Shown piece by piece: positions 1-39,060 of a DNA stretch of 64,000 nt. The notes under the pieces were generated by a model, which made no database searches, was not told the DNA's origin, and was given only the letters and a program-made list of their open reading frames with translations. The stretch's first letter is position 1. Each line of letters begins with the position of its first letter. The position numbers were made by a program, and so were the translations under genes. This DNA is from Takakia lepidozioides (taxonomy: Eukaryota > Plantae > Bryophyta): the NCBI GenBank assembly GCA_030704615.1, contig CM060732.1:76198001-76262000 (forward strand), read 5' to 3'.

Positions 1-403
1 CACGACGGATGACCCAAAAACCACGTTGTACATTTTCGAGAGCAGAGACAAGATGATAAAGACTCTCGCACATAGATGGTGGATTGCACCTGAAATTGCA
101 ATTGTTCATAATGTAGCCAACAACCAGTCAGATGGCACACCTCGTAGGCCCCCTCTAACCGTGCCATCAGAGACCTTTTCAATTGGGAAGATAGCCCAGG
201 CAATAAATGGGGATAACACGTTCGATGCAAGCATGTTCAACGATATGTCTACTGGAACCTGTTTTGCTTCGGCTCTGGAAAACTTGTGTGTAGACATAGT
301 AGAGTTGCAGTACAAACTAGAAAATGTTGTGAAGCGTTTCATGACGGGGCTATTCAATTGGCCTGAGCCCAAAAATTGCTGGAGGATGGATAGAAACTTG
401 TAG
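1..403 (+). CDS. 3' end (C-lobe) of the TE-borne protein kinase, copy 1 (5'-partial)
   Basis: WWIAPE motif; near-identical to 9185-9569 except for a 70-bp segment; stop at 401-403. Confidence 0.85.
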   Translation, partial: TTDDPKTTLYIFESRDKMIKTLAHRWWIAPEIAIVHNVANNQSDGTPRRPPLTVPSETFSIGKIAQAINGDNTFDASMFNDMSTGTCFASALENLCVDIVELQYKLENVVKRFMTGLFNWPEPKNCWRMDRNL

Positions 404-559
404 ACCTTTGACTGTACATCATGTTTGAATAAAGTTGTTTTCAATTATGTTTGTCTCGTACCATAATGTTTTAATGGTTTGTTACTTGGCCATGGCACCT
501 GGGTCCATCATATGGGATAATCAAGCACCACACCCACGAATCTTGAAGAGTGACAGTGT

Positions 560-3500: not shown

Positions 3501-3660
3501 AAGCTACCGGACAAGTATGAGTTCGATTTTAAATATTGCAATGGATGAACCAATGGTATCTTCATGTAGCAATTTTTGATTGTTTTGAAACTTTGCCAGT
3601 ATATTGTACATGTTGTCAAACAGGTACCGAACAAGTATGAGGTCATTCAAAAATGGTTCA
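560..3660. repeat. ~120-bp satellite in alternating direct/inverted blocks (copy 1)
   Basis: Unit ...gtgtcttgtacatgccctcttaaagttaccggacaagtatgaggtcaatctaaaatggtt...gggtgaaccaat recurs (e.g. 1308, 1428). Inverted, diverged units ttgatctcatatta occur at ~1717, 1837, 1957, 2077. Confidence 0.85.
2335..2675 (+). repeat. ~21-bp minisatellite (aatttgaggggctgaaattgc-like)
   Basis: More than 10 degenerate tandem units; the reverse complement occurs at ~10520-10850. Confidence 0.85.
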
Positions 3661-4345
3661 AAGGAATTTTTCAATTAAATCCAATATGTTTGGAAGTGGC
3701 AAGAACACCCCTGGAATAGGAGCAACTTGGTCACGCCATGTGTTCTGCCAATACTTTACAACACTCGTAATGACAACCTTGAAATTGTCCAACACCTCCT
3801 GCTGCTGGGGGTATCTGGGCAACTCTGGAAGAAATGGCCCTTTATCCCGACGAGGCACCCAATACCTCTCATTCATATCCTCCCAACGGATGCTAGCGGC
3901 CTCCAACTCCCTCAGAAATAGGTCTCTCCCAATCGGTTCGCGATTGTATGGGTCGTTTTCCGCTGGCACCCACGGATCCTTAGGCAGTCGGAAGAATCTT
4001 TGTCTGGTACAGCTCCAATGCTCTCCCAAGTTCCGGCAAAAAAACTTCATTTGGACTGGGTCCCGTATGCCTCTAGCACGCACGGTTATTTCCCAGTTGG
4101 ATATCAACCAAAAAGTCACCGGATCTTTAACCCTAGATAACGTCATAGCATCCAAGGCGTGCACCTCTCTTGGAGCATCCCATATCATTGTCTCCCACCA
4201 GTGCTAACAATTTAAAAACTCGTAAGGCGATACATCCAATGGCATGTTGTACCGGTTGTACTCGTATCCCGTGGGCATATTGTTTTGCAACCCAAACAAC
4301 TTTAGAAACGTCGATGGATTGGTCCACGGCAGTCAAGGCATTGGC
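3658..4345 (-). pseudogene. Fragment of cargo gene B (end of RING-H2 plus C-terminal domain), copy 1
   Basis: The 176-aa ORF 3658-4188 matches the frameshifted 12969-13460 region. The minus strand at ~4320-4345 reads SQCLDCRGPIHRRF, the last Cys pair of the RING. Confidence 0.75.
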
Positions 4346-4354
4346 TTTAATGGG

Positions 4355-5250
4355 TGCGACCACCAGCAGGGGGGTGGTCGCAATTTTTTTTTTTTTTTTT
4401 TATGGGTGCGACGGAGGTTGTCGTAGATTTTTTTTTTTTTTTTAATAGGTGCGCCCACCAGCAAGGAGGTGGTCGCATTATATATATATAGGCGCGACCA
4501 CCAATAGGGGGGTGGTCGCAGAAATTTTGTTTAAAACAAATAGTGCACTGAGTGCAACTCGGACGATTCTGGGGTCAAATCTTGCTACTTGATGGGTGTG
4601 GTATGGTTCGTGTGTGGTGCCCCATTCGTACGCCTCTTGGCGTATAAATGAAAGAGGTTATTTTCTCCTGTCACTACTAAGGGGCCTGATTTATGAGCTG
4701 TCGCTCCCAGATGTTTCCTAGGAAAAAAAAAATTAAAAAAAAAAACTGCAACCACTTGCAGGGAGGTGGTCGCACCATTTTTTTTTAGGGGCGACCACCA
4801 GCAAGGCGGTGGTCGCAGAATTTTCTATTTTTAAATAGCTGCGACCACCAGCAGGGGGATGGTCGGACCATTTTTTTTTTTGTTAAATAGGTGCGAATAA
4901 TATGTGGAGCAGTTTCATTCGGGCTCTAATCCTAGAGTGGTCCAGGAATTACTGTGGCCCAAGAATTAGAGTGGGGCGCCTATGTAGGAAGGCCACGTGT
5001 ATTAAGGAATGAGATGAGGGGGTCCAAAAAAAGAATGGAGGAATTGGCTAAATTTAGAATATGAAGTCATATAGGGTTGACATGTATTCAGAGCCTTCGT
5101 ACTAACTTACTATCTATTAAATCAGTAAATAGGTGCGACCACCACTGACCAGCAGGGGGGTGGTCGCAACATTTTTCTTTTATTTTAACAGTTGTGACGA
5201 CTGCTACTGGTGGTCGCACAATTGTCTTTTTTTAAACAGGTGCGACCACC
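4355..5250. repeat. TGCGACC...GGTCGCA palindrome units with T-rich spacers (copy 1 internal array, interrupted by a SINE)
   Basis: Repeated gcgaccaccagcagggggtggtcgca units at 4357-4520, 4750-4895 and 5135-5250. Confidence 0.85.
4543..4745 (+). mobile_element. 5'-truncated copy of the tRNA-derived SINE-like sequence
   Basis: Matches 16195-16390; ends in an A-rich tail. Confidence 0.55.
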
Positions 5251-6252
5251 AGGAGGTTGGTCCCCTTGCACCTGTATGTATGTTTGGAGAGGCAGATGAA
5301 AAGCACATGTATCGATTCCCCATGGATTTGTGAAGGGGAAGATAAATGTTGGGAGCTGAACCTAGCCTTTGTGGCTTTCGAAACCATAATAGGAAATCAA
5401 CAATGTAAAGGTAATGACGAAACACAAACACACGCATAACCACCAAACCCTTTCTTGGGTACACATATTCCACCATTTTTATTTCCGTACACGTATGCAT
5501 GTACCCAAACTGAAACAATGATATCCATGGAAACATACTACACATCATGTGACAGAAGTTATAGCTGTACCTAGTTCCGTCTGGCACGACGACGATGGTA
5601 TGATCTCACGCCTAGTACAAAATCTTCATCCCCACTCACTTCACCCACGTTCCCATGATCAGTGCTAGAATCATGATCTCCATCTGTTCGTTCGTTTCCA
5701 GAGGCAACTGGCCGTTGGACATGTAGTCGTCCTCGGAGTACGTTCAGTTGTCTCTCTGGTCGATTTCCACTCCTATCATGAATATCATATAGGGTATCAG
5801 GCCTGTTCACAGGTTAGTCACCAACAAAAGGTTGCACAATTCACTGTCGTTTCTGGGCTTGTCCCGGATTTCGTGTTGGCCTTGGAGCAGGTATCGTATG
5901 AGGAAGGCTACTCGCACGTACATCAGAGGGGCCAACATGAGAGGAAGGGGTATGAGATGGACCAGCGAGGGTCGAGGGAGCACGGTTCACATGCGGACGT
6001 CGTCGGGCCAGATGAAACGACAATGGCCGGTCGTCGTCATCCGATGGTTCGACTTGCAGAAGTCCCGCAGCAGAAGATACATCTCCAAGGATCGAAGTAG
6101 CGATGGAAGGAATTACATGAGGGGGAGAGAGATTAGATGGACCAACATGGGATGGACCGACTTGAGAAAGAGAAACATGAGATGAAGCGACATGAGATGA
6201 AACACGGTTCACAGGGGCACGATGTCGGTGAAAGAATGACAATAGCCGGCTT

Positions 6253-6998
6253 AAATCACAGTAAATTGTAACACACCACAAGGGCGGGCCAAATCCAAAA
6301 TACACAAAGATCTATTTAGTCCCCACCTAATGAATTGAGAAAATGGGTTTGGAAGCCAAAGATGGGATGCGGGGGTAGGAAAAAGCCCACAATTTTATAA
6401 AAATCGGAGACAAAACCTCCCCCTCCGTGTCAATGGCTTCCCTTTTCTTCTAACTCCGCTCGGCAGAATGCAAAGCATCCCATTCCCACAGAGCTAAAGG
6501 GGAAGAGTGAAAGTGAGAGCCAAGAATGGCCTACTTCCCCTTATATGGGCGACCACTCAAAGGCGCCCAAGCGCCTTCCGGAAGATGTCCGTCACGTGGC
6601 GGCCACCAGCACAATGCGGCGACCGCCACAGCGACGGTCGCCTGGGCCGGCGGCCCATCCCGCCAGGTGACCGCTGACATGGCGATCGCCCGTGCCGGTG
6701 ACCCATCCGCCCGGGGACTGCCGATGTGGCGACCGCTGACGTGGCAGACGCTCGGGCCGGCGCCCCATCCCGCCCAGCGCCCGGCGCCTGCATGGTCGCC
6801 TCGGCAAGCCGTCACTTGGCCGGTCACCTTCGTCATCGCTGTCGCCAGCGTTGCAAAAGAAGGTTAAAAATTTATTAAAAAAATAAAAATTACCGCGACA
6901 AATGTCTTCTTATGGACGCGACGTGACGACCGTCACATCTTGACGTGACGCCGACGTTGACGTGTTACTGCGGCGTCACGTCCATACTTGCAACCGGG
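6253..6998 (-). mobile_element. Inverted left end of a related hAT subfamily member
   Basis: The minus strand starts cccggttgcaagtatggacgtgacg, matching cctagttgcaaatttggacgtgacg at 7041. It is followed by a TGACGT cluster, GC-rich GGCGACC/GGTCGCC motifs (6575-6850) and a TATA-like site at ~6541. Confidence 0.6.
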
Positions 6999-7334
6999 GC
7001 CGTGGCGTCGAAACCCCCCCCCCCCCCCCCCCCTTTTTCCCCTAGTTGCAAATTTGGACGTGACGTGGCGTTGACGCGTCAGCATCACATCCGACGTCAG
7101 TGACAGATGTGCGTCAGTGACAGATGTGCATTAGCATCACGTCCGACGTCAATGACGGATGTGCGTCACGTCACGTCCTAAACCGACGTTACTGTACATA
7201 AATATGTTTATTTTTTTACTTTACTATTGACTGTTTACTATGAGAACATACGCGGCAACCGATGTGGCCTCATTACGTGGACTTCATTATTTATCTGTAA
7301 AATTCATATATTATGATTTATATTGTCAATCATG

Positions 7335-7795
7335 CGACCGTCAGCAACGGTTGGTCGGACAATTTTCTTTAAAAAAAATTAAGTTGCGACCACCAGAAGT
7401 GGGTGGTCGCACATTTTTTCTTATTTTTTAAATGGGTGCGACCACCAGCAATAGGTGCGACCACAAGCAGAGGGTGGTCGAACATTTTTTCTTTTTTTTT
7501 AAATTGGGTGTGACCACCAGCAGGTGGTGGTCACAACTTTTTCATTTTTTTTAAATAGGTGCGACCACCAGCAGGGGATGGTCGCACATTTTAAATTATT
7601 TTTTAAATGGGTGCGACCACCAGCCGATGGTGGTCGCAGACTTTTTCTTTTTTGTTATTAGGTGCGACCGCTTATGGGGGGTCGCACATTTTCGTTTTGT
7701 TTTTAAAAAGATGCGACCACCAGTAAGGGGGGGGAGGGGTCGCAGCACTTTTTTTGTTTTGTTATTAGCTGCGACCACCCATAGGTGCGACCGCT
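7335..7795 (+). repeat. Left subterminal array of ~9 TGCGACC palindromic units (~50-bp period)
   Basis: tgcgaccaccagcaggggatggtcgca-type units separated by T-rich spacers. Confidence 0.9.
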
Positions 7796-8082
7796 CCCTG
7801 GACATGTGGCGAGCCATGAATAGGCAGCAGAGGCGGTCGCGCGCCAGGCCTCTCCAGGCAGTATATGAAGGCCTACCCCTCATTCCTAACCCATTTTTTT
7901 TCCCTCTCTGTGAGTGCAGTTCTGGGGCTTCTTGGAGTTTGAACTTCGGTGGCCAGAACTGAGCGTGGGGGGGGGGGGGGGGATTTGTGTGGAGGAGGAG
8001 TTTTTGCCTTTTTTCCCTGGGACTGCGGGAGAGTTTGCTTTGGGTACTATACCAATAGAGGGTGAGGAAATTGGTCTGCTAG

Positions 8083-8090
8083 TATATAAA
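8083..8090 (+). promoter_or_regulatory. Candidate TATA box of the kinase gene
   Basis: tatataaa about 70 bp upstream of ATG 8157. Confidence 0.5.
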
Positions 8091-8156
8091 GTTATCAATA
8101 GTCTGGGTTTAGTTTTCCGTTACGAAACCGCGTCTATTCCACATAGTACTTTCATT

Positions 8157-9569
8157 ATGTCCGGAAACGTTGTTTCGAATGTAGTGTCAGGGTATCCAAG
8201 CACAGAGGCCGCGAAGGTGGTGAAGCAAGTAGTGCTGGATTATTTGAAGGACAATGACATAATGCGTTTGAATCTTTTGTATGTCCGACATGGGACTGAG
8301 GGGTTCCTTAGATTCCATCACAATATAGAGATGAGAATGAGGGAGGCTTTGGCCGGGGATGAATGGGAGGAGGACAGGGCGAAGTTCCAGTTCACGAAAT
8401 GGATGGAAGACCGGGCCCATGATGCCACATGGAATCTGAGGCAAACCTTGGAAAGGTTTGTTACGAGAACACCTGTAGCTGAAGGTCGCATGCCAACTTC
8501 GGATGAGGAGTTGTTTATGCTTGTGGATTGGTGGTCTGACATGACAAAGGCCCACGCCAAACGACGTACAAAACCACTCCCATGGAATGCAGGGTCCTCG
8601 TCCGCGGATGCGGCATTGAACGTGAGATACATATCCACAAACGCAAAGGTACAACAACTCGACGCGCCCAAACATGGAGGGTATGGTACAATTCGGAGGG
8701 TTAGAATTGTTGGGGATCAATTCATTCCTCCATCATGGGAGCTAGCAGGGAAAACGCCCAGGGAAACAAATGCTGAGCTTGCCAAAGTCCAACATAACAA
8801 TGAGGCGTTGGCTGTAAAGTTCCATCATTTCGGCATTATAAAGTATTTTGCGTTGCATCCACGTCGAAATGAAGGTTACATACATTGGTGGAATGGGGGG
8901 ACAATACGATCATGGTTGAGTATTGATAGGAAATGGGGGAATGATCGGGATAACAGGGAGTTAATGGAACGATGGGGGATGGAGCAGGAAATGCAGGAGA
9001 TCAACCGACTGGTTCGATTCCGACAGAATCGCACCCAATTGGCATGGGCGCTTTTGCACATCATGCTCAACGTCCATAATCACCACCTCTTACACAACGA
9101 CATGTCCCCCGACAACATCTTGTTGCATTTTCCACAAGGGTCTGAAGATGTGTACATTGGGATATGCGATTGGGGGATGGCCTCCACGACGGATGACCCA
9201 AAAACCACGTTATACATTTTCGAGAGCAGAGACAAGATGATAAAGACTCTCGCACATAGATGGTGGATTGCACCTGAAATTGCAATTGTTCATAATGTAG
9301 CCAACAACCAGTCAGATGGCACACCTCGTAGGCCCCCTCTAACCGTGCCATCAGAGACCTTTGCAATTAGGAAGATAGCCCAGGCAATAAATGCACAAGT
9401 TTTCCAGAGCCGAAGCAAAACAGGTTCCAATAGACATATCGTTGAACATGTTTGCATCGAACGAGTAGAGTTGCGATACAAACTAGAAAATATTGTGAAG
9501 CGTTTCATGACGGGGCTATTCAATTGGCCTGAGCCTAAAAATTGCTGGAGGATGGATAAAAACTTGTAG
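8157..9569 (+). CDS. Intronless non-RD protein kinase with an N-terminal helical region (~470 aa from ATG 8157)
   Basis: Gly loop KHGGYGTI, Lys in ELAGKTP, alphaC Glu in NNEALA, catalytic loop HNDMSPDNILL, DWG in place of DFG, WWIAPE. The frame is open from 7914, but the first ATG after the TATA box is 8157. Confidence 0.9.
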   Translation: MSGNVVSNVVSGYPSTEAAKVVKQVVLDYLKDNDIMRLNLLYVRHGTEGFLRFHHNIEMRMREALAGDEWEEDRAKFQFTKWMEDRAHDATWNLRQTLERFVTRTPVAEGRMPTSDEELFMLVDWWSDMTKAHAKRRTKPLPWNAGSSSADAALNVRYISTNAKVQQLDAPKHGGYGTIRRVRIVGDQFIPPSWELAGKTPRETNAELAKVQHNNEALAVKFHHFGIIKYFALHPRRNEGYIHWWNGGTIRSWLSIDRKWGNDRDNRELMERWGMEQEMQEINRLVRFRQNRTQLAWALLHIMLNVHNHHLLHNDMSPDNILLHFPQGSEDVYIGICDWGMASTTDDPKTTLYIFESRDKMIKTLAHRWWIAPEIAIVHNVANNQSDGTPRRPPLTVPSETFAIRKIAQAINAQVFQSRSKTGSNRHIVEHVCIERVELRYKLENIVKRFMTGLFNWPEPKNCWRMDKNL

Positions 9570-9724
9570 ACCTCTGACTGTACATCATGTTTGAATAAAT
9601 GTTGTTTTCTATTGTGTTTGTCTCGTACCATAATGTTTTAATGGTTTGTTACTTGGCCATGGCACCTGGGTCCATCATATGGGATAATCAAGCACCACAC
9701 CCACGAATCTTGAAGAGTGACAGT

Positions 9725-12620
9725 GTACATCGGGTCAATGGGTGAACCAATCGTTCCCATGCCAAATGATTTTAGATTGATTTGAAACTTTGGAAGTGTC
9801 TTGTACATGCCCTCTTTAAGTTACCGGACAAGTATGAGATCAATCTAAAATGGTTCTAAGGGTGAACCAATAGTTCCCCTATTAAATGATTCATGATTGA
9901 AAATTGGTTGAAAGGTTTAACGAGTCATTCGGGGGGCAAATGATTATTCCTTCGCTTGCAACTTTATGTACGTGATTTGTACGTACTTAAGCACATATGG
10001 ACCAAAGTTGAACTTCAACAAAGTTGTTTGAATGGGTTATTCAAATTCAAAGCAGAGGTATGTGTCGTATAGACGAGAAATAACCTTTCGCCTGCACATG
10101 AATTGTTTTTAATTCCATTCTGAAGCCATATGCTTGATAACAACATGAAGAGTTGCATGCAAAATATCACCATGACAGACATCGTCTGCATCCAAAACAC
10201 ATTTTATTCCTCATTTGCACTCCAAGGTGAAGTTATCTTCAACTTCATGCAATCTTTATAGAGAGTTCTGCAATAGTGAGCATAGAGCAAAGGATGAACA
10301 TTTTTTTTCAAACATTTTTCTTTGGTACATTTTTTGGCAAGGATGTGGTGGTGTGAGGGTTTCCCTATCAAATGATTTTACATTGCTTTGAAGCTTTGCA
10401 AGTGTCAGCCACATGCCCTCTTATAAGTACTCGACAAGTATGATGTGAATAAAAAATGGTTGAAAGTGTGAACCAATCATTCCGCTATCAAATGATTTTA
10501 TATTATTTTGGATGTCATTGCTTTGGTAATTCTAGCCCCCCAATGGCCCATTCTAACCCTTGAATTACAATTCAAATGCAATTCAAGCCCTTAAAATTGG
10601 TAATGCCAGTCCCTAAAATGACCAACCCCGGCCGCCCCTCAAATTGTAATTTGAGCCCTTGAAATTGTCAATTCCAACCCCTCAATTTGCAATTGAAGCC
10701 CCTGAAATTTAATTCCAACCCCTCAAATTGCACTTCTAGCCCCTAAAATGGCAATTCCCGCCCCTCAAATTGCAACTATAGCCTGTGAAATGACAATTGC
10801 TAGTGCAGCCCCTGAAATGGCAATTTCAGCCCCTGAAATTGGCTATGGGTGAACCAATCATTCCCCTGCCAAATGATTTTGGATTCATTTGAAACTTTGC
10901 GAGTGTCTTGTACATGCCCTCTTAAAGTTACTCGACAAGAATGATGTCAATGTTAAATGGTTCAAGGGTTGAACCAACAGTTCCCCTGTTGGATGATTCA
11001 TGATTAATCGTTAACGATTGATCTCATATTACACTGGGACCTATCAGAGGGTACATTGAACACACTGGCCAAGTTTCAAAACGAACGAAAATCATTTGGA
11101 TGGGCAACCATCCGTTGGCCCATTGAACGAATTTCGATTGATCTCATATTACTCTGGGGCCTCTTCCATGGTACATTGAAGATATTGGCCAAGTCTCAAA
11201 GCGAACCAAAATCATTTCGATGGCCAACCATCCGTTGAGCCATTGAATGAATTTCGATTGATCTGATATTAGTCCGGGACCTGTGAGAGGGTATCTCAAA
11301 CGTACTGGCAAAGTTTGGAAGCAAACAAAAACTGATTTGGATGGCAACCATCCGTTCACCCATTTAATGTATTATGTTCGATCTGCTATTATTTTGGGAC
11401 GGGTTGGGCTGCGTTTCACGTGCTCATGTTTTTTTTTTCATTCCGTTTTTGAATGGGGCGTGTAATGACTCCATATGCAACGTACGTGCCAATTTTGGGA
11501 GCGATCAAAATTCATTTGGACCCAAAACCACAGTTTCTTGCCCATTTTGCACTCCAAACTTGATTTGTGCTTTATTTCATGCACTCTTCATAGAGAGTTC
11601 TGCAACAGTGAACGAAGAGAACACTTTTTTTGGGGGAATTTTTTATTGGCCAAAATTTTGGCGGGAGTAGCAGTGGGATTGCTTGAAGCCGCCAGAACAA
11701 AATTGAGCCAAAATCAAAATCGATACGTGCCAGAAACCCCAATGAAAGGCAGTGCAAACCTATTTATTGGCTTAAAATTAATTTAAATTCAATTACATTC
11801 TGGAATGGCTTGGTGTCGATGGGGAGGCAAACAATTTATTCGTCTGTTGTGTCTCCGCACATGTGTCGCACATATGTTCAAGCACATGCGGGCAAAAAAG
11901 GGGCTTCAACCACATCCAATCAATGGGTGCAATAGCCGTGCATGCATTGCAGAATTACTTTTTCGCAATGAACAAAAACCAGATGACAACTAAACGCCTC
12001 ATTGGCCCATCGAACGAATTTCGATTGATCTCATATTACACTGGGACCTATCAGAGGATACATTGAACACAGGGCCAAGTCTCAAAGCGAACGAAAATCA
12101 TTTGGATGGGCATCCATCCATTGGCCCATTGAACGAATTTCGATTGATCTTATATTACTTTAGGGCCTTTTCCATGCTACATTGAATATACTGACCAAGT
12201 CTAGTTTATCCTTTTCACCATTAACGATTAATCACGAATAAATCATTTGCCTCCAAATGATTTTGGTAACCTTGATAAAAAAAAATTGAATGATTTTGAA
12301 ATTTTGCCAGTATGTTCTACATGCTTCTCACATCGACCGGACAAGTATGAGATCAATCAAAAATGGTTCACAGGAGGAACCAATGGTTACTTGATGTGCC
12401 AATTTCTGAATGCTTTCAAACTTTGCCATAGCATTGTACATGCCCTCTTAAAGGTACCGGACAAGTATGAGTCGATTTAAAATATTGCAATGGGTGAACC
12501 AATGGTATCTTCATTCAGCAATTTTTGATTGTTTTGAAACTTTGCGAGTACATTGTACATGTCGTCAAACAGAGATAACGAAACAAGTATGAGGTCATTT
12601 AAAATGGCTCAAAGGATGAA
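9725..12620. repeat. ~120-bp satellite in alternating-orientation blocks between the convergent cargo genes (copy 2); includes the 21-bp minisatellite at ~10520-10850
   Basis: Forward units at ~9730-10990 and ~12290-12620; inverted units at ~11010-11400 and ~12000-12200. Confidence 0.85.
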
Positions 12621-12719
12621 CCTCGTATTTCCAAATATTACGTAGACTATATAGTGGGTTGCACATTTAAGTTTTCACAACCTGAGACCTTTAGCCTACT
12701 TCCTACGTTTCTAGTCTTT

Positions 12720-15236
12720 TTAGTCATCTTCATCTAGATTTGTTACTTCGTTATCGTCATCTCCAGATGTTGATGAAGATGCTCCGGGTGTAGAGGACGT
12801 GCCTCCACCAGTTCGGAGAGCTCGAGCCTGGGCTCGAGTGGTCAAAGAGGGACCCAGTGTTGTGTGGTCCACCCTTGCCATCATGCGTAGCGTTCTAGGC
12901 GAGTGCTGACTCTCTTCCACATTTGCCAGAGCCGGGTTTGTCGCTCTTGCTACGGCTTCATGCAAATTTCAATTTAAATCCGATATGTTTGGAAGTGGCA
13001 AGAACATCCCTGGAATAGAGGCAACTTGGTCACGCCATGTGTTCTGCCAATACTTTACAACACTCGTGATGGCAGCCTTGAAATTATCCAACACCCTCTG
13101 CTGCTGGGGGTCTTTGCGCAACTCTAGAGGAAATGGCCCTTCATTCTGACGAGGCACCCATTCATATCATCCCAACGGATGCTAGCGGCCTCCAACTCAC
13201 TCAAAAATAGGTCTCTCCCAATCGGTTCGCGATTGTATGGGTCGTTTTCTGCTGGCACCCACGGATCCTCATGCAGTCGGAAGAATCTTTGTCTGGTACA
13301 GCTCCAATGCCCTCCCAAGTTCTGGCAAAAAAGCTCTCTTTGGACTGGGTCCCGTATGCCTCTAGCACGCACGGTTATTTCCCAGTTGGATGTCAACCAA
13401 AGGTCACCGGATCTTTAACCTAGATAAACGTCATAGCATCCAAGGCGTGCACCTCTCTTGGAGCATCCAATGTCATTGTCTCCCCCCAGTGCTGACAATT
13501 TAAAAAATCGTAAGGCGATACATCCAATGGCATGTTGTACCGTTTGTACTCGTATCCCGTGGGCATATTGTTTTGCAACCTAAACAACTCTAGAAACGTC
13601 GATGGATTGGTCCACGGCTGTCAGGGCATTGGCTGGCTCACATGGCTGCCGATATGAGACATGCGGGGTGGAACAAATGGCCACATGAACCAAACATATA
13701 GCCTCCCTCCGGTCCGTAAGGGTTTAAACACATTGTGCACACCGTACCATCTGTTACCTATGACGCTGGATTGCTACGTGGTATCCACGTCCGTTTATCC
13801 TCATGAATGTCGGATGACATCCTCGGCTGCTGTCTCCCAATCCTCCTTACTTCCAAATCCCAGTTTATGTTCATATTGGTATCAGAAATTGTATGCACAC
13901 AGTGCTCAAACATGACATCCACATCACCCCATGTGGTGACTCAGTGTACTTCGACGTGAATACATCACGCACAGTGTCGTGCCTTTGCAAATTAGCAGAG
14001 ATGTTATCTACGCTTCGATTCAACAAACGTGCTGCACGTTGGAGAGAGGACATCGCTTCTTCTATCCGTGTTTCCCATAATGCTAGACGGCCCGCCCATG
14101 TCACCCAATTCCGCCAATTCCCCTTCAACCATGGCCACAATCGGATTTGCATGACATTTGAGTACCGATATGCAACAACCCTAGCTTGCTCACGTTCCCC
14201 CACAAGCTGCTCTAATTCTTGTTCCTAGGCCGATGTAATTTGCACGGCTGAACATTCCTCAGTTTCCACTATGGGGTCCTTCCTTTTCTTTGCCTCTCCG
14301 CCGCAAGTCTTCTCCTCAACCCTCGCCGGGTCCCAGTTCAGGGGTTTGCACTTCATTCCCATACCCGATTGAGTCAACCCCGTCGATGACGCTGTCAATG
14401 TCCATTGGTGGCATATCCAAATGCGCCAATATGTCTTGCTCGTTGGTGATTGGCCTCGGGTCCTGAAGTACACCGCGTATGCTGTCGAGAGTCCCCAACC
14501 CCATTCTTTCCTTCAACTTCGCTATTTGCCACCGTTGCAAATGAACAATATCCTGCAGGGCCTTGATGTGCTGTTCATGTGCGGCCAACTGTTCCTCCAA
14601 CGGAGAGCGTACCTCGCCCCCCTCCACCTCAAACATTGAAGGCCCGGCTGCGGAGACCTGTTGCGGTGTATAATCTGGAGGTTGGTCTGCCTTTCCTTCT
14701 TCTTCCACCTCGTCGTTTCCATCCAACCGTATGATGTCATGCCCCTGATGTATATACAAGTCTAGGATATCAAAGAACATATATAGTCTAGTACGCCGTC
14801 TCGCAGTGGCAGTTTGCCAATCCACTTGTCGCAATAAAATCAACTCTGTGTACAACATGGCCGCAAATAAATACGGAACCTTGTTGTTGACAAGCGGTTG
14901 ACCCCCCAATGTTGTATGTACCTCCTCTGCCGTGTGGCGGAAATGCGGGTTGGCGCAGCAATGCAAGCTAGCTTGATTTTGTTTGGTTGTGGATCATGCC
15001 TATTTCTGGGCCACAAACGATTTATGTGACACCAGTCCATAAATTTCCTGTAGTCACCAAGCGACCACCGCTGCCCCAAACCTCCAAACTTCCCAACCTG
15101 GTTCCGCAAGAATGTTGGGGTCATTGTATATGTCCCAACGAAGTTCGCGCCTGACCCCTTTCGGTTTTTTTTTGGGAGGTCCAGGTTCATTATCGTCATC
15201 CCTGGGATGACCTCCTCTGTCTTCCTCCTCCGCCAT
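12720..15236 (-). pseudogene. Cargo gene B: NLS-like N-terminus, uncharacterised domain, coiled coil, RING-H2 finger and C-terminal domain (disrupted)
   Basis: Serial minus-strand ORF pieces at 15054-15236 (PPKKKPK), 14316-14966, 13871-14203, 13124-13396, 12969-13157 and 12720-12965. Hand translation of 13739-13617 gives CTMCLNPYGPEGGYMFGSCGHLFHPACLISAAM*ASQCPDS. This could be two genes. Confidence 0.7.
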
Positions 15237-15664
15237 TTATGGCTCTGGCTTACCCCTACTCGACATGTGTTTGCTAAGAAAAATACTCTCACAACCCTCC
15301 TAAATCGTATCTAATCCTACTCCCTAATGAATCCTCCCCAAGTACTAGAGGCATTTGTCACTCCCTCCGCAGTTCTAAGTGATATGACACAATGTGCAAT
15401 GAAAAAAACGTGGGTGCCAGAGAAGGGCTTCGAGGGAGGTACTCACAATCGATTTCGTAGAAATCAACGGCCCAAAATACCCCCCACCCAACCAATAGCA
15501 CCCCTCTCCATTTGGACTCAATGACAAGGAATGCAACTACCCATCGCCCACCAAGTCCTGGTGTAGAGAAAAGTGAGGGAGATAATGGCCTCGAAGGCCT
15601 TATAAGCCCCCCCTCCACACTCGGGGCGCGCGCTGTCATCATGACTGCGCAAGCTAGTAATAGC

Positions 15665-16142
15665 TGCAACCGCCAACAGAGGGGTGGTCGCATCATTTTT
15701 TCTTTTTTTTTATTATGTGCGACCACCAGTAGGGGGTGGTCGCAGATTTTTTTTTTTTTAATAGATGCGACCACCAGCAGGGGGTGGTCGCAGATTTTTT
15801 TTATTTTTTTTAATGGGTGCGACCACCAGGAGGGGGATGGTCGCAGATTTTTTTTATTTTTTTTAATGGGTGTGACCACCAGGAGGGGGATGGTCGCAGA
15901 TTTTTTTATTTTTTTTAATGGGTGTGACGGGGGTGGTCGCAATTATTATTTTTTTAATAGGTGCGACCACCAGCAGGGAGATGGTCGCATAATTTTTCTT
16001 TTTTTTAATAGGCGCGACCACCAGTAGAAGGGTGGTCGCAGAAATTTTGTTTAAAACAAATAGGTACGACCACCACTTGCTGGTGGTCGCACTATTTTCC
16101 TTTTCTTTAATAGATGCGACCACCAGCAAGGGGGTGGTCGCA
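15665..16142 (+). repeat. Internal array of ~10 TGCGACC palindromic units
   Basis: Units about every 50 bp (15719, 15767, 15819, 15872...); two or three further units at 16448-16560. Confidence 0.9.
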
Positions 16143-16171
16143 TAATTTTTCGATTTTTTAATATCTACCAA

Positions 16172-16392
16172 CAGTCAATAGCTCAGTTGGTTAAGTGCAC
16201 TGAGTGCGACCCGGACGATTTTGGGGTCAAATCTTGCTACTTGATGGGTGCGGTATGGTTCGTGTGTGGTGCTTCATTCATACGCCTCATGGCGCATAAA
16301 TGAAAGAGGTTATTTTCTCCTCTCACTACTAAGGGGCCTGATTTGTGAACTGTCACTCCCAAGTGTTTCCCAAAAAATTAAAAATTAAAAAA
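16172..16392 (+). mobile_element. tRNA-derived SINE-like insertion
   Basis: A-box-like tagctcagttggttaag, B-box-like gggtcaaatc, an unrelated body and an A-rich tail. No clean cloverleaf or TSD seen. Confidence 0.55.
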
Positions 16393-16877
16393 TGAACCCC
16401 CTCTCTTGCTACGTACTAACTTACTACCTATTAAATCAGTAAATAGGTGCGACTACCAGCAGGGGGGTGGTCGCAACATTTTTCTTTTATTTTAACAGTT
16501 GCGATGACCGCTACTGGTGGTCGCACAATTGTTTTTTTATAAATAGGTGCGACCACCAGGAGGTTGGTCCCCTTGCACCTGTATGTATGTTTGGAGAGGC
16601 AGATAAAATGCACATGTATCGACTCCCCATGTATTGGTGATGTGGAAGATGAATGTTAGGAGCTGCACTTGGCTTTTGTGGCTTTCGAAACCATAATAGG
16701 AAATCAACAATGTAAAGGTAATGACGAAACACAAACACACGCACAACCACCAAATCCTTTCTTGGGTACACATATTCCACCATTTTTATTTCCGTACACG
16801 TATGCATGTACCCAAACTAAAACATGGATATCCATGGAAACATACTACACATCATGTGACAAAAGTTATAGCTGTAC

Positions 16878-19810
16878 CTAGTTCCGTCTAGCACGACGAT
16901 GATGGTATGATCTCACGCCTAGTATAAAATCTTTGTCCCCACTCACTTCACCCCCGTTCCCATGATCAGTGCTAGAATCATGATCTCCATCAGTTCTTTC
17001 ATTTCCAGAGGCAACTGGCCGTTGGACCTGTAGTCGTCCTCGGAGTACGTTCAGTTGTCGATTTCCACTCCTATCATGAATACCATCTAGGGTATCAGGC
17101 CTGTTCACAGGTCGGTTATCAACAAAAGGTTGCACAATTCTCTGCCGTTTCTGGGCTTGTCCCGGATTTTGTGGTGGCCTTGGAGCAGGTCTCGTATGAG
17201 GAAGGCTACTCGCACGTACATCAGAGGACATGAGAGGAAGGGACATGAGATGTACCAGCGAGGGTCGAGGGAGCACGGTTCACATGCGGACATCGTCAGG
17301 CCAGATGAAACGACAATGGCCGGTCGTCGTCATCTGATGGTTCGACTTGCAGAAGTCCCGCAGCAGAAGAAACATCTCCCAGGATCGGAGTAGCGATGGA
17401 AGGAATTACATAAGGGGGAGTGAGACTAGATGGACCAGCATGGGATGGACCGGCTTGAGAAAGAGAAACATGAGATGGAGCGGCGTGAGATGAAGCACGG
17501 TTCACAGGGGCACGATGTCGGTGAAAGAATGACAACGGCCGGTTGTCATCATCCGACAATTCGACCTGCACATCTCCCGCAGTCCGTGGAACTCGTGGTG
17601 GGGGAGAGTTGACCTCAACTTCATTGTTGAGAGTGTGCTCCACTGGGGGAAGGGGGTCCGCAATTGGGACTCGCAGTTCATCAACAACAAGATCATCGAA
17701 TGATGGATGCATTGCAGCATCATCGTCATAAAATTCATATGGGTCATGCGGCGGATTGCCCACATCATCGGACCCATCCCAACCGTTGGAGTCGGAGTCC
17801 CTCGCGGCGTCGGTGTCATCATTGCTGCTAGATCGGGCCTCTGAGGCAGATTCTTCTCGTACCATGCAGATGCGTCACTTGCTGTCCTCTCTTGCAGTAG
17901 CCTACAATTCGTGTAGACATAAACCAATTTGTCAGCCCTGACATGATTCAACTTGTTGCGAATCTTGTTGTGAACAAACGAGTAACTGCTCCAGTTCCGC
18001 TCATATGACGAGGCAGAGCACACTTGAGCAAGAATACGCTTTGCAATGGGAGCTCACGTTCGTGCTCCAGCTCCAATCAGATCCCATCATTCATGTGACA
18101 ACATGTTCATTGCTTTTGGATCCGGCATGTCATGGAAAAGATTCTAGCGTTCCGAGAAGCACTGGTACTCGGACAAAGCTCGCTCTGCCATGTTCAAGGG
18201 CGCGAGTTGTATGATGACCCGTATAAGCCCGACTTTGGCATCCACATCGTTTCTCAAATCCGTATTGTCCAGCAAGAATAGATTCAACAAGGCCCCCACA
18301 TAATGCAAGTCTGTGCGAACCATCCGTTTGCGGTCGTAAAATGCATCATCGGTCATTGCTGCCAAATCATCATCCATAGAAAATGGAGGACGCCTCAAGG
18401 ATTGCACGTGCTTCTCAAGGTTTTCCAATATCAACCATGCTTCACCCATTATTGATTGTTTTCTATTAAACTCCCGCAAAGCAATCAACACCGGCTCCAC
18501 TATGTACACAAAATTTGTACATTTCGCCTAGAAATCGTCGGAGCGAATGATTGCGCGGACCCTCCGACTTTTGCTCAAAGACTTGGACTTACGAGGGTTG
18601 CGTAAGGTGCCCACATACGCATCTCATTGAGGGTCAATGATCACATGCTCCAGACCTGCCCTCACAGTCACCAGTCGATCCACCATCAAAAAGTTTGTGG
18701 CAAAGCGGATTTCACCCCGGCTCCTAAGGTTGTATTTGGGTTTATGCTTTCTAAACAATGTCAGAGGGATATGCTGTGTACGAATGAACGTCACAATCGA
18801 CTTTGCCCTTTTTACTAGTTGTTTCATCCATGATTATTTTCCTCAATCTTCCAAAATGAGATCAAAGATATGAGCAGCACACCCTTGGTAATATAGATGG
18901 AGATATCGTACCATCAAAATATCGGCCATATTAACCATGTTAGATGCATTGTCCGTGCACACTTGGACAATTTTATCAGCTCCAATTTTATCGATGAAAC
19001 TTGTCAACAACCCTGCTTGATAACGTGCATCTTTTCTCTCCCCGCTTGTGTCAACGGATCCCAAAAATTGTTCCCCCGCATGACAGACCAGCATGACATT
19101 GAACAGTTGTCGATTAGTAACAGAACTCCAACCGTCCGCACATATAGTGCTTCCATATTTCCAGAGAGAATCATATGTCTTTTCATTCACCTTTTGGGTG
19201 AGGTCAGACATAGCCCTCTTCTAGCAATCCTGTGCGGAGATCGCGATAACTTGGAGGTGTGTATGTGGACTTGGAATCGGACATGGCTTTGACAGTTGCC
19301 ACAAACGAAGGAAGCCTCGAGACATTGAACGGAATATTGGCCTCGTAGAAAAATTGGGCCCACTTCTTATCCAGAGTCATCCTATGCGACAAATTTAAGT
19401 CTTCTTGCATTGATTGTTGCCTCAATGGTCTGGTCCGTACAAGTGCTGGCGTACAATCGGGTGTTGTTCTTGACCCACCGGCTTCTCCACGAACAGCAGA
19501 CGCCTCGCAAGAATCCCCATGGGTATAACTCTGAGGGACATTTTGATTCGAACCTGGAGTGTTTGGCTCAGAAGCCGCAGCCACATCAAGAGACGGTGGG
19601 ATATTGTCTCCACATTGGGCAAAGTGGGCTTTCACTTCGCAGGGAGGCTTTTGGGCACAAACTAACCCTTGCATTCTTCCCATCTCTGTAGCCAAGGTGA
19701 TATAACATGCGATCTTTGCGACCCGCCAGCTTCAATGCACAAAGATTGCATTGAACACCGTCCTTTTTGTGCGGGTCTACGGTGAACCAAGGGATCCACT
19801 CCTCCATCAT
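16878..19810 (-). pseudogene. hAT transposase (BED zinc finger, DUF659-type core, hATC dimerisation domain, low-complexity tail), disrupted
   Basis: CNLC...YHL...C; FFYEANIPFN; PPSYRDLR; ICADGWS; CTDNASNM; CAAHIFDLILED; IRFAT; CSASSYERNWSSYSFVHNKIRNKL...KLVYVYTN. Several stops and frameshifts. Confidence 0.92.
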
Positions 19811-20184
19811 CCTCACACCCAAAACCCTAACCACAGACTTAAGGTTGAACGAAGAACACTAGTGTACTTGGTAGATTTGTCAAGAGCAATAGAAGTTAGA
19901 ACAGAATGCGATGGCCCAACACTACGGCATCAATCCAAGTAGAATTGAAGTACTATGCACCATGTAGTATTGTGCTTTTTGACAATTTGCTGCAGTGGCT
20001 CTGGTGGAAGTCATAACAGCAAACGGCCCACACCCTATTCTTGGGCTTACACTCTTGCTCAAGGAATAGAGAACATTCACTCGCCACAAAAGTGTTTACC
20101 ACAAAAGAAGTGAGGGACATTGGGACCACCTTATATAGCCTCCAGCCTCCAAGCCTTACACGCTTGACGAATCAGAATCCAATG

Positions 20185-20750
20185 TTGTGACCGCCCCAGG
20201 TCGCACAAGGAAGTCGCATGTTATTTTTTTAAAAAAAAACTGTTGTGACCACCCTCATGCTGGTGGTCGCAGATATTAAAAAACAGAAAATTGCTGCGAC
20301 CACCCCCCTGCTGGTGGGCGCATCTATTAAAAAAAATAAAAATGCTGCGACCACCCCATGCTCGTGGTCACAGAGATTATTAAAAAAAAAACGAAAAAAA
20401 AGAAGAAGAAAATTGCTGCGACCATCCCCCTGCTGGTGGTCGCACCTATTAAAAAAACAGAAAAATGCTGCGACCACCCCATGCTGGTGGTCGCAGATAT
20501 TAAAAAATAGAAAAATATTGCGACCACCCCAGTGATGGTGGTCGCACCTATTACAAATAAAATAAAAATTGTGCGACCACCAGTAGCAGTGGTTGCAACT
20601 GTTTAAGAAAAGAAAAAAATACGACCACCCCTGCTGGTGGTCGCATCTATTTTAAAAAAACAAAAAATGTTGTGACAACCCCTCTGCTGGTGGTCGCAAC
20701 TATTAAAAAATAAGATAAATTCTGCGACCACCACCATTTGGAGGTCGCAC
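20185..20750 (-). repeat. Right subterminal array of ~10 TGCGACC palindromic units (A-rich spacers; mirror of 7335-7795)
   Basis: tgcgaccacccccctgctggtggtcgca units at a ~50-bp period. Confidence 0.9.
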
Positions 20751-21733
20751 CAATTTAACAATAATGACTTAAAAATGACCTCAAATATTGGCGGATGGAG
20801 TAATTTATAAAACAATTCATTCACTTGCCAAGGTGTCGCTTCGAATACAACGTGTCCACCTACGTGGCATATTTTTCACCTAACTCATGTTTTATTGTTT
20901 TTTCGGCAAAACTGACGTGACGTTGGTTGCGTCAGCGTCAGGTCCGACGTGACGTGACGTGATGTGACGTCACTGACGTGTGCAACCCTGCCTTTTCCTG
21001 TAGTGGAAGCATTTTACAAGCATGCGTCTGGAACCTTGCCCTCTTATGTAGACCCAATACACGTGTGGTCCAAGCACATGTGCAGATGAGAGTGGGAGGA
21101 AGTGAATGCATGGTTAAGGGTGCAGCCAGGCCGATAGCAACAAACCAGAAATAAAATGATTTATCTTTTGAGAAAGCCACAAGTCTACTAGCTGAACTTA
21201 GTTGTTTACAACTAGTAGAAGGAGTCTAGCAGGAGTCGGAGTTCGAACATCTATTCCTGGTATTCGAGTTCGAGATCGAATTTCTCTGTTTATGTCTAGA
21301 TGCTTTTGAAGCTTACAAATATGAGGAAAACTGAGTGGCCCATCGGCCTTGGCTCCGGGAATTGACATATGTCGAGCATATGTCATCTCCAGGATACAAG
21401 TTGGTGCCCAATCTTGACCATTTCAATTGAAGCAGGCTTCACACATACATGTAAGTACCTAATCAACTGTTCAATATCTTTTTTTGTCTCAAAAGTTTCA
21501 TTTGTGGAAACGGACACCACTAAACTAATACTGAACATCGAGTTTACCATCTGGAGCACAAATGATGGGGAGCAACCCTTGAGACCAGTTGAGAAACAAC
21601 CAAAGCAGCTCGCCTAAGTACCCACAATTGAGAATATGCAACAAAAGAAGTTCGGACAACAAACATGGTAGAACTCGTGGAGATATTGCTTCCAAGTGCC
21701 CAAGTTACGAATATTAAAAGGAAAATAAGTTAT

Positions 21734-24700
21734 TGTTAGAATTAGGATGGATGAACTTTTGGGTTCAACTCATCATCCGTTAGATATTCTAGATGCCTAG
21801 AATAGATGCGGCTTATAATAGCTATTAGATAAGTCTTGAGGTTATAGACATCTCTCGGAAAGAGACATATCTCGGTAGGAGACATCTAGTAGATATATAT
21901 ATTGACCTCAGGGGAGAGGCAATCAATCTTTGTATCTTTGTTCAGACCTCTATGGTTGGGAGGAGAGCACATATCTCGGTAGGAGACGTCTAGTAGATAT
22001 ATATATTGACCTCGGGGGATAGGCAATCAATCTTTGTATCTTTGTTCAGACCTCTATGGTTGGGAGGAGAGCTCCTATGTAATAGAGTCATATTGTTTCA
22101 TTCCTGCATCTTCGGAAGTATGTGTGTGTTTTCTTGACATGGTATCAGAGCGGGTTTCTTTGTGGAATTCTTTACAGGATTGTGAGATTTAGTTTCATTC
22201 ATATTTCTAGAAGTGGGATTGATTAGCAAGAGAAAGTACTTGCTAGAGCAAAGATCTGTGTTGTGTAGTTTCCTTGGTGGTGGTGTAAAGTTCTTATTTC
22301 TGTACACCTGTATCCATATCTCTTTGAGTCTGAGAGAAGTAGGACATCACTATACTTGATTAGTTTGGTCTGTGTAGATTTGAAATGTCTCAACATTTTA
22401 GTTATCATGCGATTGCAAATTCGATGGAAACATGTTTCATATATGGAAGGACAAGATGCGAATGGTTCTTGTTAGAGAGGGCACATGGAAGGTTGTGTCT
22501 GGCAAACGTAAGAAACCATCAGAACTAGATGTTGATGCACTACAACAGTGGGAGGATCTTGATCAGAAAGCTCTTGCAACTATTTCTTTGCATGTGAGTG
22601 ATTCCTTGTTTGGGCAAGTGAGTAAGCATGAGACATCTTGTGAAGCTTGGGAATTCCTAGTCAAGATGTATAAGCCTAAGAATGGAAATGCGTTGTTGCA
22701 GTTGCAACAATAATTTTTCACTCTTAAAATGAGTGAGGGAGATTCCATTGCTTCTCACATAGCCAAGATGCAAACTTTACTGGATCAGATTGCAGCGACA
22801 GACTCAGAGATTTCAGAGTTAGACACATGCATGACATTGATGGGGAGTTTGACTCCAGCATTTGAGTTTGTTGCGGTATCTCTTGGAACTCGTCCTATTA
22901 CTGATCTGTCTATGGAGTTAGTTGTTGGAGTGTTCCTTTAGGAGGAATCGTGTTAGAAGCGTCTTGTTGTTGCTACCCTATCAGATATTACGCTCAACAC
23001 AGGGCACAAGTGCAAGCACTTTGTCTCTACCTCTGGTATATCTACCCAGGAGAAGGGGAAGAAGAAGAAGAGGAAGTGTTTCTATTGTGGGAAATCGAAT
23101 ACCATGCTAGTGAATGTCAAAAGAAGGAAGCTGATAGGAAGGCTGACAAACTCAAGAGATCTGCACCTGAAGTCATTACGTGGAGGGTGCTAGTAATAAC
23201 AATGAGTTGTTTATAACTGCCTTGTCTACAGCTCCTAGTGACGACACTTGGTACATCGACTCTGGTGCTTCTCAGCATATGACATCGCATAGAGAATGGT
23301 TTTCTACCTACGAAGACCTTTCAGGTGACAGAAAGGTGTATCTTGGTGATGACAACGCTCTTCAGATCAAGGGTAAGGGTATTATTCCTTTCAAGCTGCC
23401 AAGTGGAGTCTGCAAGAACATCATGGAGGTTCTACATGTTGAGGGACTCCAGAAGAATCTACTATCAGTCAGCAAGATGGAGAATCAAGGTTATCAAGTT
23501 AATTTCAGATCCGGGAGCTGTTTGATGGAGACTCATGAGGGCAATGTGGTTGTGATGGGTGTTCGGACATGACGACTCTACAAGTTGTCAGGATCTCCAC
23601 AGAGAGCAGTTCATGCAAAGGTGTCACGATGCGTCGACACTAATGGTGCTATGGGGAAGGCTGATTTGTGGCATCAACGTCTCGGTCATCTTGGCATTGC
23701 AAGCTTGAAGAGCTTGAAGACAAGGGGCATGGTCGAAGGTATGGACTTGGAGGTTACATCTAACCTAGTGTTCTGTCAAGGTTGTGTATAAGGAAAGTAT
23801 CACCGCAATCCATTTCCAGCTACAGGTGGTACATGGGCATCGGAGTTGCTTGAGTTGGTACATAGATGTGTGTGGGCTGATGGAGAACATTTCTTATGGT
23901 GATGCTAGATACTTTGTCACTTTCATTGATGATTTGTCGCAGAAAACCTTTGTTTATTTCATGAAGGTTTTGGATAAGTTCAAGGTATTCAAAGCTCTTG
24001 CAGAGAAGCAAACAGGGAAGGTGATCAAGAAGTTGCGGTGCGACAATGGTGGTAAGTACATCTTAAAAGCATTCCATCAGTTTTGTGAACAACATGGGAT
24101 TGAGTGACAGATGACTACACCTTACATCCTACAGCAGAATGGAGTTGTAGAACGAAAGAACCGAACTTTGGTTGAGAGTGCAAGGTGCATGTTGGAGCAC
24201 CAAGGTCTTGGCAAAGTATTTTGGGCTGAGGCTATTTCTACTGCTGTGTATGTTAACAATCCAGTTTCTACCATTGCAGTCTTGACACATGTGGAGGCAT
24301 AGAGTGGCAGAAGCCAAGTGTTGCACACCTGAGAGTTTTTGGTTGTGATGCATATGCTCATGTTCCGAAAGATCAAAAGCGCTCAAAGCTGGATTCCAAA
24401 AGCATTAGTGCATGTTTTTGGGATATTGTGAGGGGTCTAAATGCTATCGTATGTTTGACTCAGAACGCCATGTTTTGGTTAGGAGTCATGACGTCCACTT
24501 TGTTTAGTCTTCTAGGCTTACAAAGAAGGTGGGAGTTGGTGAGATTTATATCACAATTGCTGATGTTCTGCATGTTTTACCGCAACCTCATTCCATTGAT
24601 CCAGTTCCACTTATACTAGCTGATACTGTTCCAGTTGCAGTGCTCGAGGTACCAAGTGAACATGCTGATCTTAGATCTGAAGGGAGTCATGGTGATGTCA

Positions 24701-39000: not shown

Positions 39001-39060
39001 GCAGTCATTCTGGAGGGACCCAAGAACCCAAGCTTCAAGCTGTACAGCATGACTTACTGA
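33027..39060 (+). CDS. NLR immune receptor (helical N-terminal domain, NB-ARC, LRR), 6 exons, ~1110 aa
   Basis: Exons 33027-33485, 33826-34142, 35071-36046, 36729-37070, 37529-37798 and 38092-39060; GT-AG introns keep the frame. P-loop GQAGLGKTT, Walker B IAIDNL, GLPMAL, FLDIAVFF, MHD, and regular 24-aa LRRs. Confidence 0.92.

Follow-up and report, generated by a model that had tools for sequence, protein, structure and literature searches.

A probable decayed copy of a large hAT transposon family with kinase and RING-H2 accessory genes in the moss Takakia lepidozioides

Introduction

The hAT elements are the textbook one-gene cut-and-paste transposons, and conserved accessory genes are rare in DNA transposons, known cases including VANC in VANDAL elements, the second open reading frames (ORFs) of CACTA, MuDR and Harbinger, and the accessory genes lately reported from algal Plavaka elements. 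A stretch of 64,000 nucleotides from the moss Takakia lepidozioides (GenBank assembly GCA_030704615.1, contig CM060732.1, positions 76,198,001 to 76,262,000 of the forward strand; this whole stretch is called the window below, and positions are counted from its first letter) contains at 7041-20990 a hAT element of 13.95 kb, with a CAGGG-type right end and a degenerate left end, in which a protein kinase gene and a gene for a RING-H2 protein accompany the transposase gene. The locus raises the question of whether these two genes belong to the transposon or are host genes that it has picked up, and what they might do for it. Comparison with related elements makes it very probable that 7041-20990 is a decayed copy of a high-copy family of large hAT elements of seed-free land plants that carries accessory genes of its own. 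In the sequences compared, the three genes have been under long-term purifying selection inside the element lineage, and the kinase and RING genes are conserved accessory genes rather than captured scraps.

Intact relatives and mobility of the family

Kinase homologues about 35% identical over their full length were found in the moss Ceratodon purpureus and on metagenome contigs. Intact relatives hold three separate intronless genes between CAGGG...CCCTG termini, coding for a transposase of about 1000 amino acids (aa), a kinase of about 480 aa and a RING protein of 800-1150 aa. On one metagenome contig of 17.1 kb (L010), an open kinase gene (494 aa), a RING-H2 gene (1039 aa) and a transposase gene (966 aa) lie without introns between CAGGGTTACCA at 445 and CAACCCTG at 16201, together with subterminal repeats of the GGACGTCC type, and the transposase contains the domains DUF659 and Dimer_Tnp_hAT (the latter at 6.8e-10). 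The left terminus of the L010 type was recovered in identical form on contigs from three samples, joined to three unrelated flanks. No matching 8-bp duplication was seen in the flanks of L010 itself; because the same terminus has three different flanks, we infer that L010 represents a multi-copy element assembled from different insertions. The same trio is present on an independent metagenome contig (L011; kinase 495 aa, RING protein 1140 aa, transposase 1080 aa), on which a search for termini found none. The initial annotation would have been refuted by kinase and RING homologues unlinked to hAT ends, and this check came out in its favour: all three genes lie between CAGGG termini in L010, and L011 supplies the trio.

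Four loci of C. purpureus are 95-98% identical, with similarity that runs from exactly CAGGGTTGTC to exactly CAACCCTG and flanks that differ. The Ceratodon elements hold an open RING gene of 792 aa, a 210-bp array, the kinase and a transposase that reaches 932 aa. The Ceratodon locus L008 (3626-11407) is a 7.8-kb deletion derivative that contains the RING gene and a kinase fragment and is flanked by a perfect 8-bp duplication, AGTTGAAG. A 53-aa kinase peptide recurs without change on 10 contigs, all of them above 1 Mb in length; the three that were listed belong to two Ceratodon assemblies. Related elements are inserted with 8-bp duplications at many sites, and the earlier proposal of a mobile family is borne out by the one left end with its three flanks and by the perfect duplication of L008. 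In a further relative (L015) the transposase is paired with a RING gene, and an ORF with DUF7869 neighbours the hAT element at that locus.

Selection and predicted protein structure

Between L010 and L011 the proportion of synonymous differences (pS) is 0.80, that is, saturated, whereas the proportion of nonsynonymous differences (pN) stands at 0.31 in the kinase, 0.44 in the RING protein and 0.35 in the transposase, with each of the six ORFs open; low pN against saturated pS indicates that the accessory genes are constrained about as much as the transposase. The ratio of nonsynonymous to synonymous substitution (dN/dS) for the Ceratodon RING gene is 0.18, a within-family comparison that comprises only 5 changes and carries little information.

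The catalytic residues G174, K199, E216, H313-N314-D315, N320 and D338-W339 are invariant in 19 of 19 family kinases, the protein encoded in the window included, and cover the Gly-rich loop, the beta3 Lys, the alphaC Glu, the catalytic-loop Asp and Asn and the metal-binding Asp, with the motifs HND and DWG in place of HRD and DFG. An AlphaFold model of the kinase (pLDDT 75) has an N-terminal helical domain followed by a bilobal kinase domain, for which Foldseek returned ULK1, FGFR2, LIMK1, JAK and IRAK4 (E 6e-10 to 1e-8 at 11-15% identity; target TM 0.53-0.68 for the matched kinase-domain chains), the first three at E of about 1e-9 and target TM 0.6-0.68. The protein is a divergent but complete eukaryotic protein kinase, and phosphotransfer is predicted.

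In the RING proteins, the eight zinc ligands of a C3H2C3 finger (C697, C700, C715, H717, H720, C723, C734 and C737) are invariant in 15 of 15 sequences, as are many residues of the flanking domains, and the RING protein of an intact element matches Pfam zf-RING_2 at 1.4e-8. The predicted structure shows a confident N-terminal domain (31-180) and a confident C-terminal domain (820-975), with a helix of about 100 residues between them. Over the RING finger the model confidence is only 55-70, and there Foldseek matched RNF165, gp78, RNF4 and RNF12 (rmsd 1.5-2.6 A over about 50 residues, probability 0.96-0.99). A RING-H2 cross-brace fold is probably present in the family, and ubiquitin-ligase activity is predicted. 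A profile of the N-terminal domain of the RING protein retrieved 253 cluster representatives among 1.84 billion proteins; the domain starts no more than 80 residues from the N-terminus among the 150 matches listed, and of ten long matches that were scanned, six had a RING domain and none had another known functional domain. A feature search of the Atlas with this domain gave no usable match. On the result of the profile search, the domain family is small and self-contained. A fourth ORF of 343-392 aa, present in L010 at 4701-5732 (-) and in L011 at 3987-5165 (-), encodes a paralogue of this N-terminal domain without a RING finger, and no counterpart of it came to light in the copy at 7041-20990.

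The kinase and RING genes could be host genes captured by transduplication, in the manner of Pack-type elements, and without a role for the element. Plant DNA transposons do capture pieces of host genes, two of the three genes are broken in the window copy, and recent copies of the kinase have evolved nearly neutrally, all of which would accord with capture. We nevertheless consider it exceedingly improbable, because the full-length intronless pair accompanies the transposase across lineages whose proteins are only 27-55% identical, the ORFs of L010 and L011 are intact with pN far below pS, the N-terminal domain family of the RING protein is small, and no host-type paralogue was seen. The capture reading is largely refuted, in line with the initial annotation, which had held that these are not Pack-type scraps. 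Retention of a kinase and a RING-H2 protein as conserved accessory genes, across proteins about 30-55% identical, would make phosphorylation, and probably ubiquitination, part of the life cycle of this hAT lineage.

Ends, boundaries and repeat arrays of the Takakia element

Direct reading confirmed the hAT ends that had been proposed for the window. The left terminus and left subterminal region (7041-7240, +) are rich in GACGT/CGTCA motifs; the terminus itself (7041-7051) is degenerate, having CCTAG for CAGGG, and reads cctagttgca at 7041-7050. Compared with the family sequence CAGGGTTGCAA, three of the first five bases of this terminus, CCTAGTTGCAA, are changed. The right subterminal region and right terminus (20791-20990, +) contain GACGTGACG repeats and end in TGCAACCCTG (tgcaaccctg at 20981-20990), the reverse complement of which, CAGGGTTGCA, is the canonical family end and matches the termini of L010 and of the Ceratodon elements in an alignment of termini. 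Across the 64-kb window the 9-mer GACGTGACG or its complement occurs nine times, each time no more than 200 bp from one of the three element ends present, which bears out the earlier observation of subterminal motifs at the ends.

The flanks read directly as CTTTTTCC at 7033-7040 and CCTTTTCC at 20991-20998. They match at 7 of 8 positions, as reported before, and would match CCTTTTCC at 8 of 8 if the left T-run had gained one extra T, which is the simpler reading. The left flank lies inside a C20-T5 tract, and since the flanks consist of pyrimidines only, a 7/8 match would arise by chance in a few percent of cases, so that the target-site duplication alone is moderate evidence. The boundary is also visible in contig depth, a check that covered the left end of the element: the summed depth of contigs in DNA run X1, made from this organism, climbs from 592 through 2,883 to 18,292 across 6796-7167 and is 30 to 100 times greater within the element than to its left. 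This step marks a repeat boundary at the left terminus and shows the family to be high-copy.

Each of the three genes is headed by the same tandem array, with a 52-bp unit that contains the palindrome GCGACCACC..GGTGGTCGC. Tandem Repeats Finder placed array 1 (52-bp unit) at 7385-7731 upstream of the kinase gene, array 2 (52-bp palindromic unit) at 15658-16163 upstream of the RING gene, and array 3 (52-bp palindromic unit) at 20231-20749 upstream of the transposase gene, and the arrangement of an array before each gene is found both in the window and in L010. Further tandem arrays, with 120-bp and 42-bp units, fill 9730-12622, where the 3' ends of the kinase and RING genes face each other.

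These features bear on whether the 14-kb unit is a composite, formed when a small hAT element inserted in or next to an unrelated element that carried the kinase and RING genes. Transposons are plentiful in the region, and one Ceratodon kinase (P0007, see below) lies outside a neighbouring hAT copy and beside a different DDE-type ORF, as a composite might lead one to expect. A composite origin is highly improbable all the same: the trio of L010 lies within one pair of matching termini, the RING gene and kinase fragment of L008 share a single pair of termini, flanked by a perfect duplication, each of the three genes is preceded by the same palindromic array, and the unit in the window is bounded by only one pair of hAT-type ends with GACGT repeats.

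The three genes of the Takakia copy and their decay

The kinase and RING genes of the element at 7041-20990 are convergent, as first described. The kinase gene (8157-9569, +) is an open ORF of 470 codons, and its 470-aa product, with the N-terminal helical domain and then the divergent eukaryotic protein kinase domain, has a weak but significant match to Pfam Pkinase (3.7e-8) and keeps all the family-invariant catalytic residues. In the C-terminal tail, a 70-bp segment (9394-9463) is inverted and about 18 bp are lost with the frame kept, so that some 30 kinase tail residues are swapped for 24 unrelated ones. The reverse complement of this segment agrees with 218-288 of the upstream copy described below at 68 of 70 bases, and the opposite-strand joints at 9393/9463 are present in contigs of three runs (X1, X2 and X8). 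An exact-sequence look-up with the window kinase found no matching record.

The remnant of the RING-H2 gene occupies 12720-15236 (-), where tblastn with intact relatives of 1039 and 1077 aa and a frame map show homology along the minus strand from 15236 to 12720 over the length of the 1039-aa RING-H2 protein of an intact element. In order, it comprises the family-specific N-terminal domain, a variable coiled-coil middle, the RING-H2 finger (13739-13593, the motif being located at 13739-13575, -) and the conserved C-terminal domain. There are at least five frame changes and one in-frame stop within the RING, and the last (eighth) zinc ligand has changed from Cys to Ser. Because the C-terminal domain of the upstream copy is in one frame and the relatives are intronless, the breaks are frameshifts and not introns.

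The hAT transposase remnant (17296-19810, -) consists of a zinc-finger region, a DUF659 core, a dimerisation region and an acidic tail, the start near 19810 being taken from the translation and a tblastn segment. Its DUF659 piece at 19211-18843 (-) matches Pfam at 9.5e-29, which confirms the hAT transposase recognised earlier. In tblastn the remnant aligns with P0072, an intact relative, as three segments that occupy three frames, with 54% identity over residues 208-663; DUF659 and Dimer_Tnp_hAT are both listed for P0072, without positions, and a Pfam scan of the broken window pieces gave no match to the dimerisation domain. The broken genes were searched piece by piece. Seven in-frame stops fall in 19220-17847 (458 codons), and two frameshifts lie near 19650 and 19210.

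The copy at 7041-20990 is dead, with pseudogenes for transposase and RING protein and a rearranged kinase gene. It belongs to the hAT family and is not autonomous, since no intact transposase gene is present in it. The description of the cargo as whole genes stands for the intact relatives, in which they are full length, and fails for the RING gene of the window copy, where the only open ORF of the three, that of the kinase, is itself altered. Where other copies differ from it (run X1), the window has A for their G at 35 places and T for their C at 20 places, an excess that fits deamination of methylated cytosines in a silenced element.

Decay is very uneven along the copy. The kinase region (7914-9569) has no stop or frameshift in 551 codons and shares about 96-99% identity with the neighbouring copy, against about 92% for the remainder of the element, and at least 15 disabling lesions have accumulated in the RING and transposase genes (12720-19810). 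The unevenness might stem from gene conversion, from a chimeric origin or from a progenitor whose transposase had died earlier. The idea that the open kinase ORF reflects selection on this copy was rejected as unproven, the region being simply much less diverged (about 3% against about 8%).

Weighing the evidence and possible functions

Several observations weigh against reading 7041-20990 as one copy of a family in which the kinase and RING genes are the element's own. The left terminus is degenerate and the duplication lies in a tract of low complexity; the boundaries of this copy, taken alone, are drawn partly from comparison with the family. In a distant transposase lineage (L014, about 40% identical) a RING gene adjoins and there is no kinase within 20 kb, which suggests that the kinase may have been added later or may be dispensable. 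The order kinase, RING, transposase is constant, with orientations that differ between lineages; constant order with differing orientations fits three independent transcription units. Between the window kinase and that of L006, recent copies, dN/dS is 0.76 from 23 changes, near-neutral evolution of a kind expected among dead copies. Transcription evidence is weak and consists of contigs about 96% identical over 8665-9574, from two runs that are only guessed to be RNA. For the N- and C-terminal domains of the RING protein, searches of the PDB (Foldseek, VIA-wide) and the Atlas brought up nothing beyond coiled-coil and RING matches; as these domains were searched within the full-length model and not folded singly, a missing match is weak evidence. 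Lastly, the annotated Ceratodon kinase P0007 (L001 on CM026436.1, 10001-11491, +) shares 62% identity with the kinase of L010 but is not part of the hAT copy next to it, whose left end is at 12242. Near P0007, at 5384-7345 (-), is an intact ORF of 653 aa that has a DDE-like core different from that of hAT elements, and the kinase may travel also with another kind of element. Kinase and RING ORFs of this family are prone to be mis-annotated as host genes in bryophyte genomes, and one Ceratodon kinase homologue already stands as a hypothetical protein.

The transposase would bind the GACGT-rich subterminal repeats and cut and paste the element, and the shared palindromic arrays could serve as a common control or self-recognition platform for the three genes. 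The kinase may phosphorylate, and the RING protein ubiquitinate, proteins of the host or of the element in the element's favour, the two likeliest routes being the blunting of host silencing and the steering of break repair at excision and insertion sites. An anti-silencing role for the accessory pair, by analogy with VANDAL elements, is possible though doubtful. A more specific scheme, which seems somewhat unlikely, is that the kinase-RING module recognises the element's own DNA through the palindromic arrays and modifies chromatin, silencing or repair proteins there. In this scheme, the Cys/His-rich N-terminal domain of the RING protein or the zinc finger of the transposase might bind the arrays, and the element would escape silencing or control its own repair. 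Were it true, the hAT superfamily would include a self-directed accessory system of a new kind, one older than the divergence of the moss lineages.

The pair might instead serve transposition itself, through a phospho-dependent ubiquitin signal that acts on the stability or activity of the transposase or, the element being very long, recruits double-strand-break repair both to the gap left at the donor site and to the point of insertion. The RING protein is predicted to be a long coiled coil with a RING-H2 finger, which is a common build of break-response ligases; the kinase is constrained as much as the transposase, and the trio has been kept together despite changed gene orientation. However, no sequence or fold match to a repair ligase or checkpoint kinase beyond generic domains was found, and ordinary hAT elements do without such genes, so that we regard a role in transposition as unlikely. 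Whichever function applies, accessory genes of this kind open the questions of how a transposon manipulates host silencing or repair and why these elements are so large.

Comparison with known elements

With the canonical plant hAT elements (Ac/Ds, Tam3, Tip100 and the angiosperm DUF659 type) the family shares the 8-bp duplication, short CAGGG-type termini, subterminal repeats, a DUF659 core with a C-terminal hAT dimerisation domain, and internally deleted non-autonomous derivatives. It differs in measuring 14-17 kb rather than a few kb, in having three genes rather than one and in its long internal tandem arrays, and its transposase, at about 1000 aa, shares only about 30% identity with the DUF659 proteins of angiosperms, which measure 640-790 aa.

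The VANDAL elements, which are Mutator-like and encode the anti-silencing protein VANC, likewise have an accessory gene beside the transposase and short repeated motifs in their own non-coding DNA. They belong, however, to a different superfamily, and the accessory proteins of the present family (kinase, RING-H2) are enzyme-like, so that a link to anti-silencing would be one of analogy; no sequence or fold similarity to VANC was found for the kinase and RING proteins. The Plavaka elements of red algae are also giant cut-and-paste elements with a long-kept set of accessory genes, mostly degenerate copies, and tandem inverted-repeat arrays beside the accessory genes, but they are of another superfamily and carry other accessory proteins. 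They are of CACTA/EnSpm lineage, and their PAG1-3 include a DNA methylase-SET and a ParB-like-oxygenase protein (bioRxiv 10.1101/2025.02.11.637652); the word 'kinase' is absent from that paper, and its sole mention of 'Ring' is a domain of a host transcription factor. ToxhAT, a fungal hAT element of about 14 kb, is described (bioRxiv 10.1101/2024.03.04.583430) as carrying ToxA, a host-interaction effector moved between fungal pathogens. It shares with the present family the hAT type, the size of about 14 kb and the presence of non-transposase genes, and differs in that its cargo is not a conserved enzyme-like pair co-evolving with the transposase.

An enrichment of hAT elements on the sex chromosomes is reported in the paper on the Ceratodon genome, and 'kinase' is absent from its main text. 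Literature searches turned up no hAT element described as carrying both a kinase and a RING gene, in agreement with the initial annotation, which likewise named none.

Neighbouring copy and surroundings

Upstream of the element, at 1-6998 (+), lies a further member of the family, a deletion derivative truncated where the window begins. Self-BLAST shows it to be collinear with 9185-17542 (94.35% identity over 4,599 aligned bases, with 180 transitions and 80 transversions), and both accessory genes are represented in it, as the initial annotation had stated. Its parts are the kinase 3' end (1-403), 120-bp arrays, an ORF for the RING C-terminal domain (4188-3658, -), the transposase tail region (5095-6249) and a right terminus near 6988-6998. 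The N-terminal half of the RING gene and the transposase core are missing, which makes this copy a non-autonomous deletion derivative. The two copies lie nearly end to end (6999-7040 region), the right terminus of the upstream copy being 34 bp, with a run of 20 C, from the target-site duplication of the main copy, and both facing termini are degenerate (CCCGG and CCTAG for CAGGG); local hopping or an aberrant transposition or repair event might have brought about this arrangement.

Two relatives occur in records that point to bacteria. A transposase relative (P0108, 44% identical) is filed at NCBI under a 'Bacilli bacterium' genome bin, and a RING homologue (L012), which was left unused, terminates a contig whose other genes are of bacterial type; both are probably mis-binned plant DNA or chimeric assemblies.

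Just to the right of the element in the window is a copia-type gag-like ORF (22432-22713, +), and farther right are pieces of an NB-ARC plus LRR resistance-type gene and several PPR genes (34955-39060, +, and 51400-54658, +).

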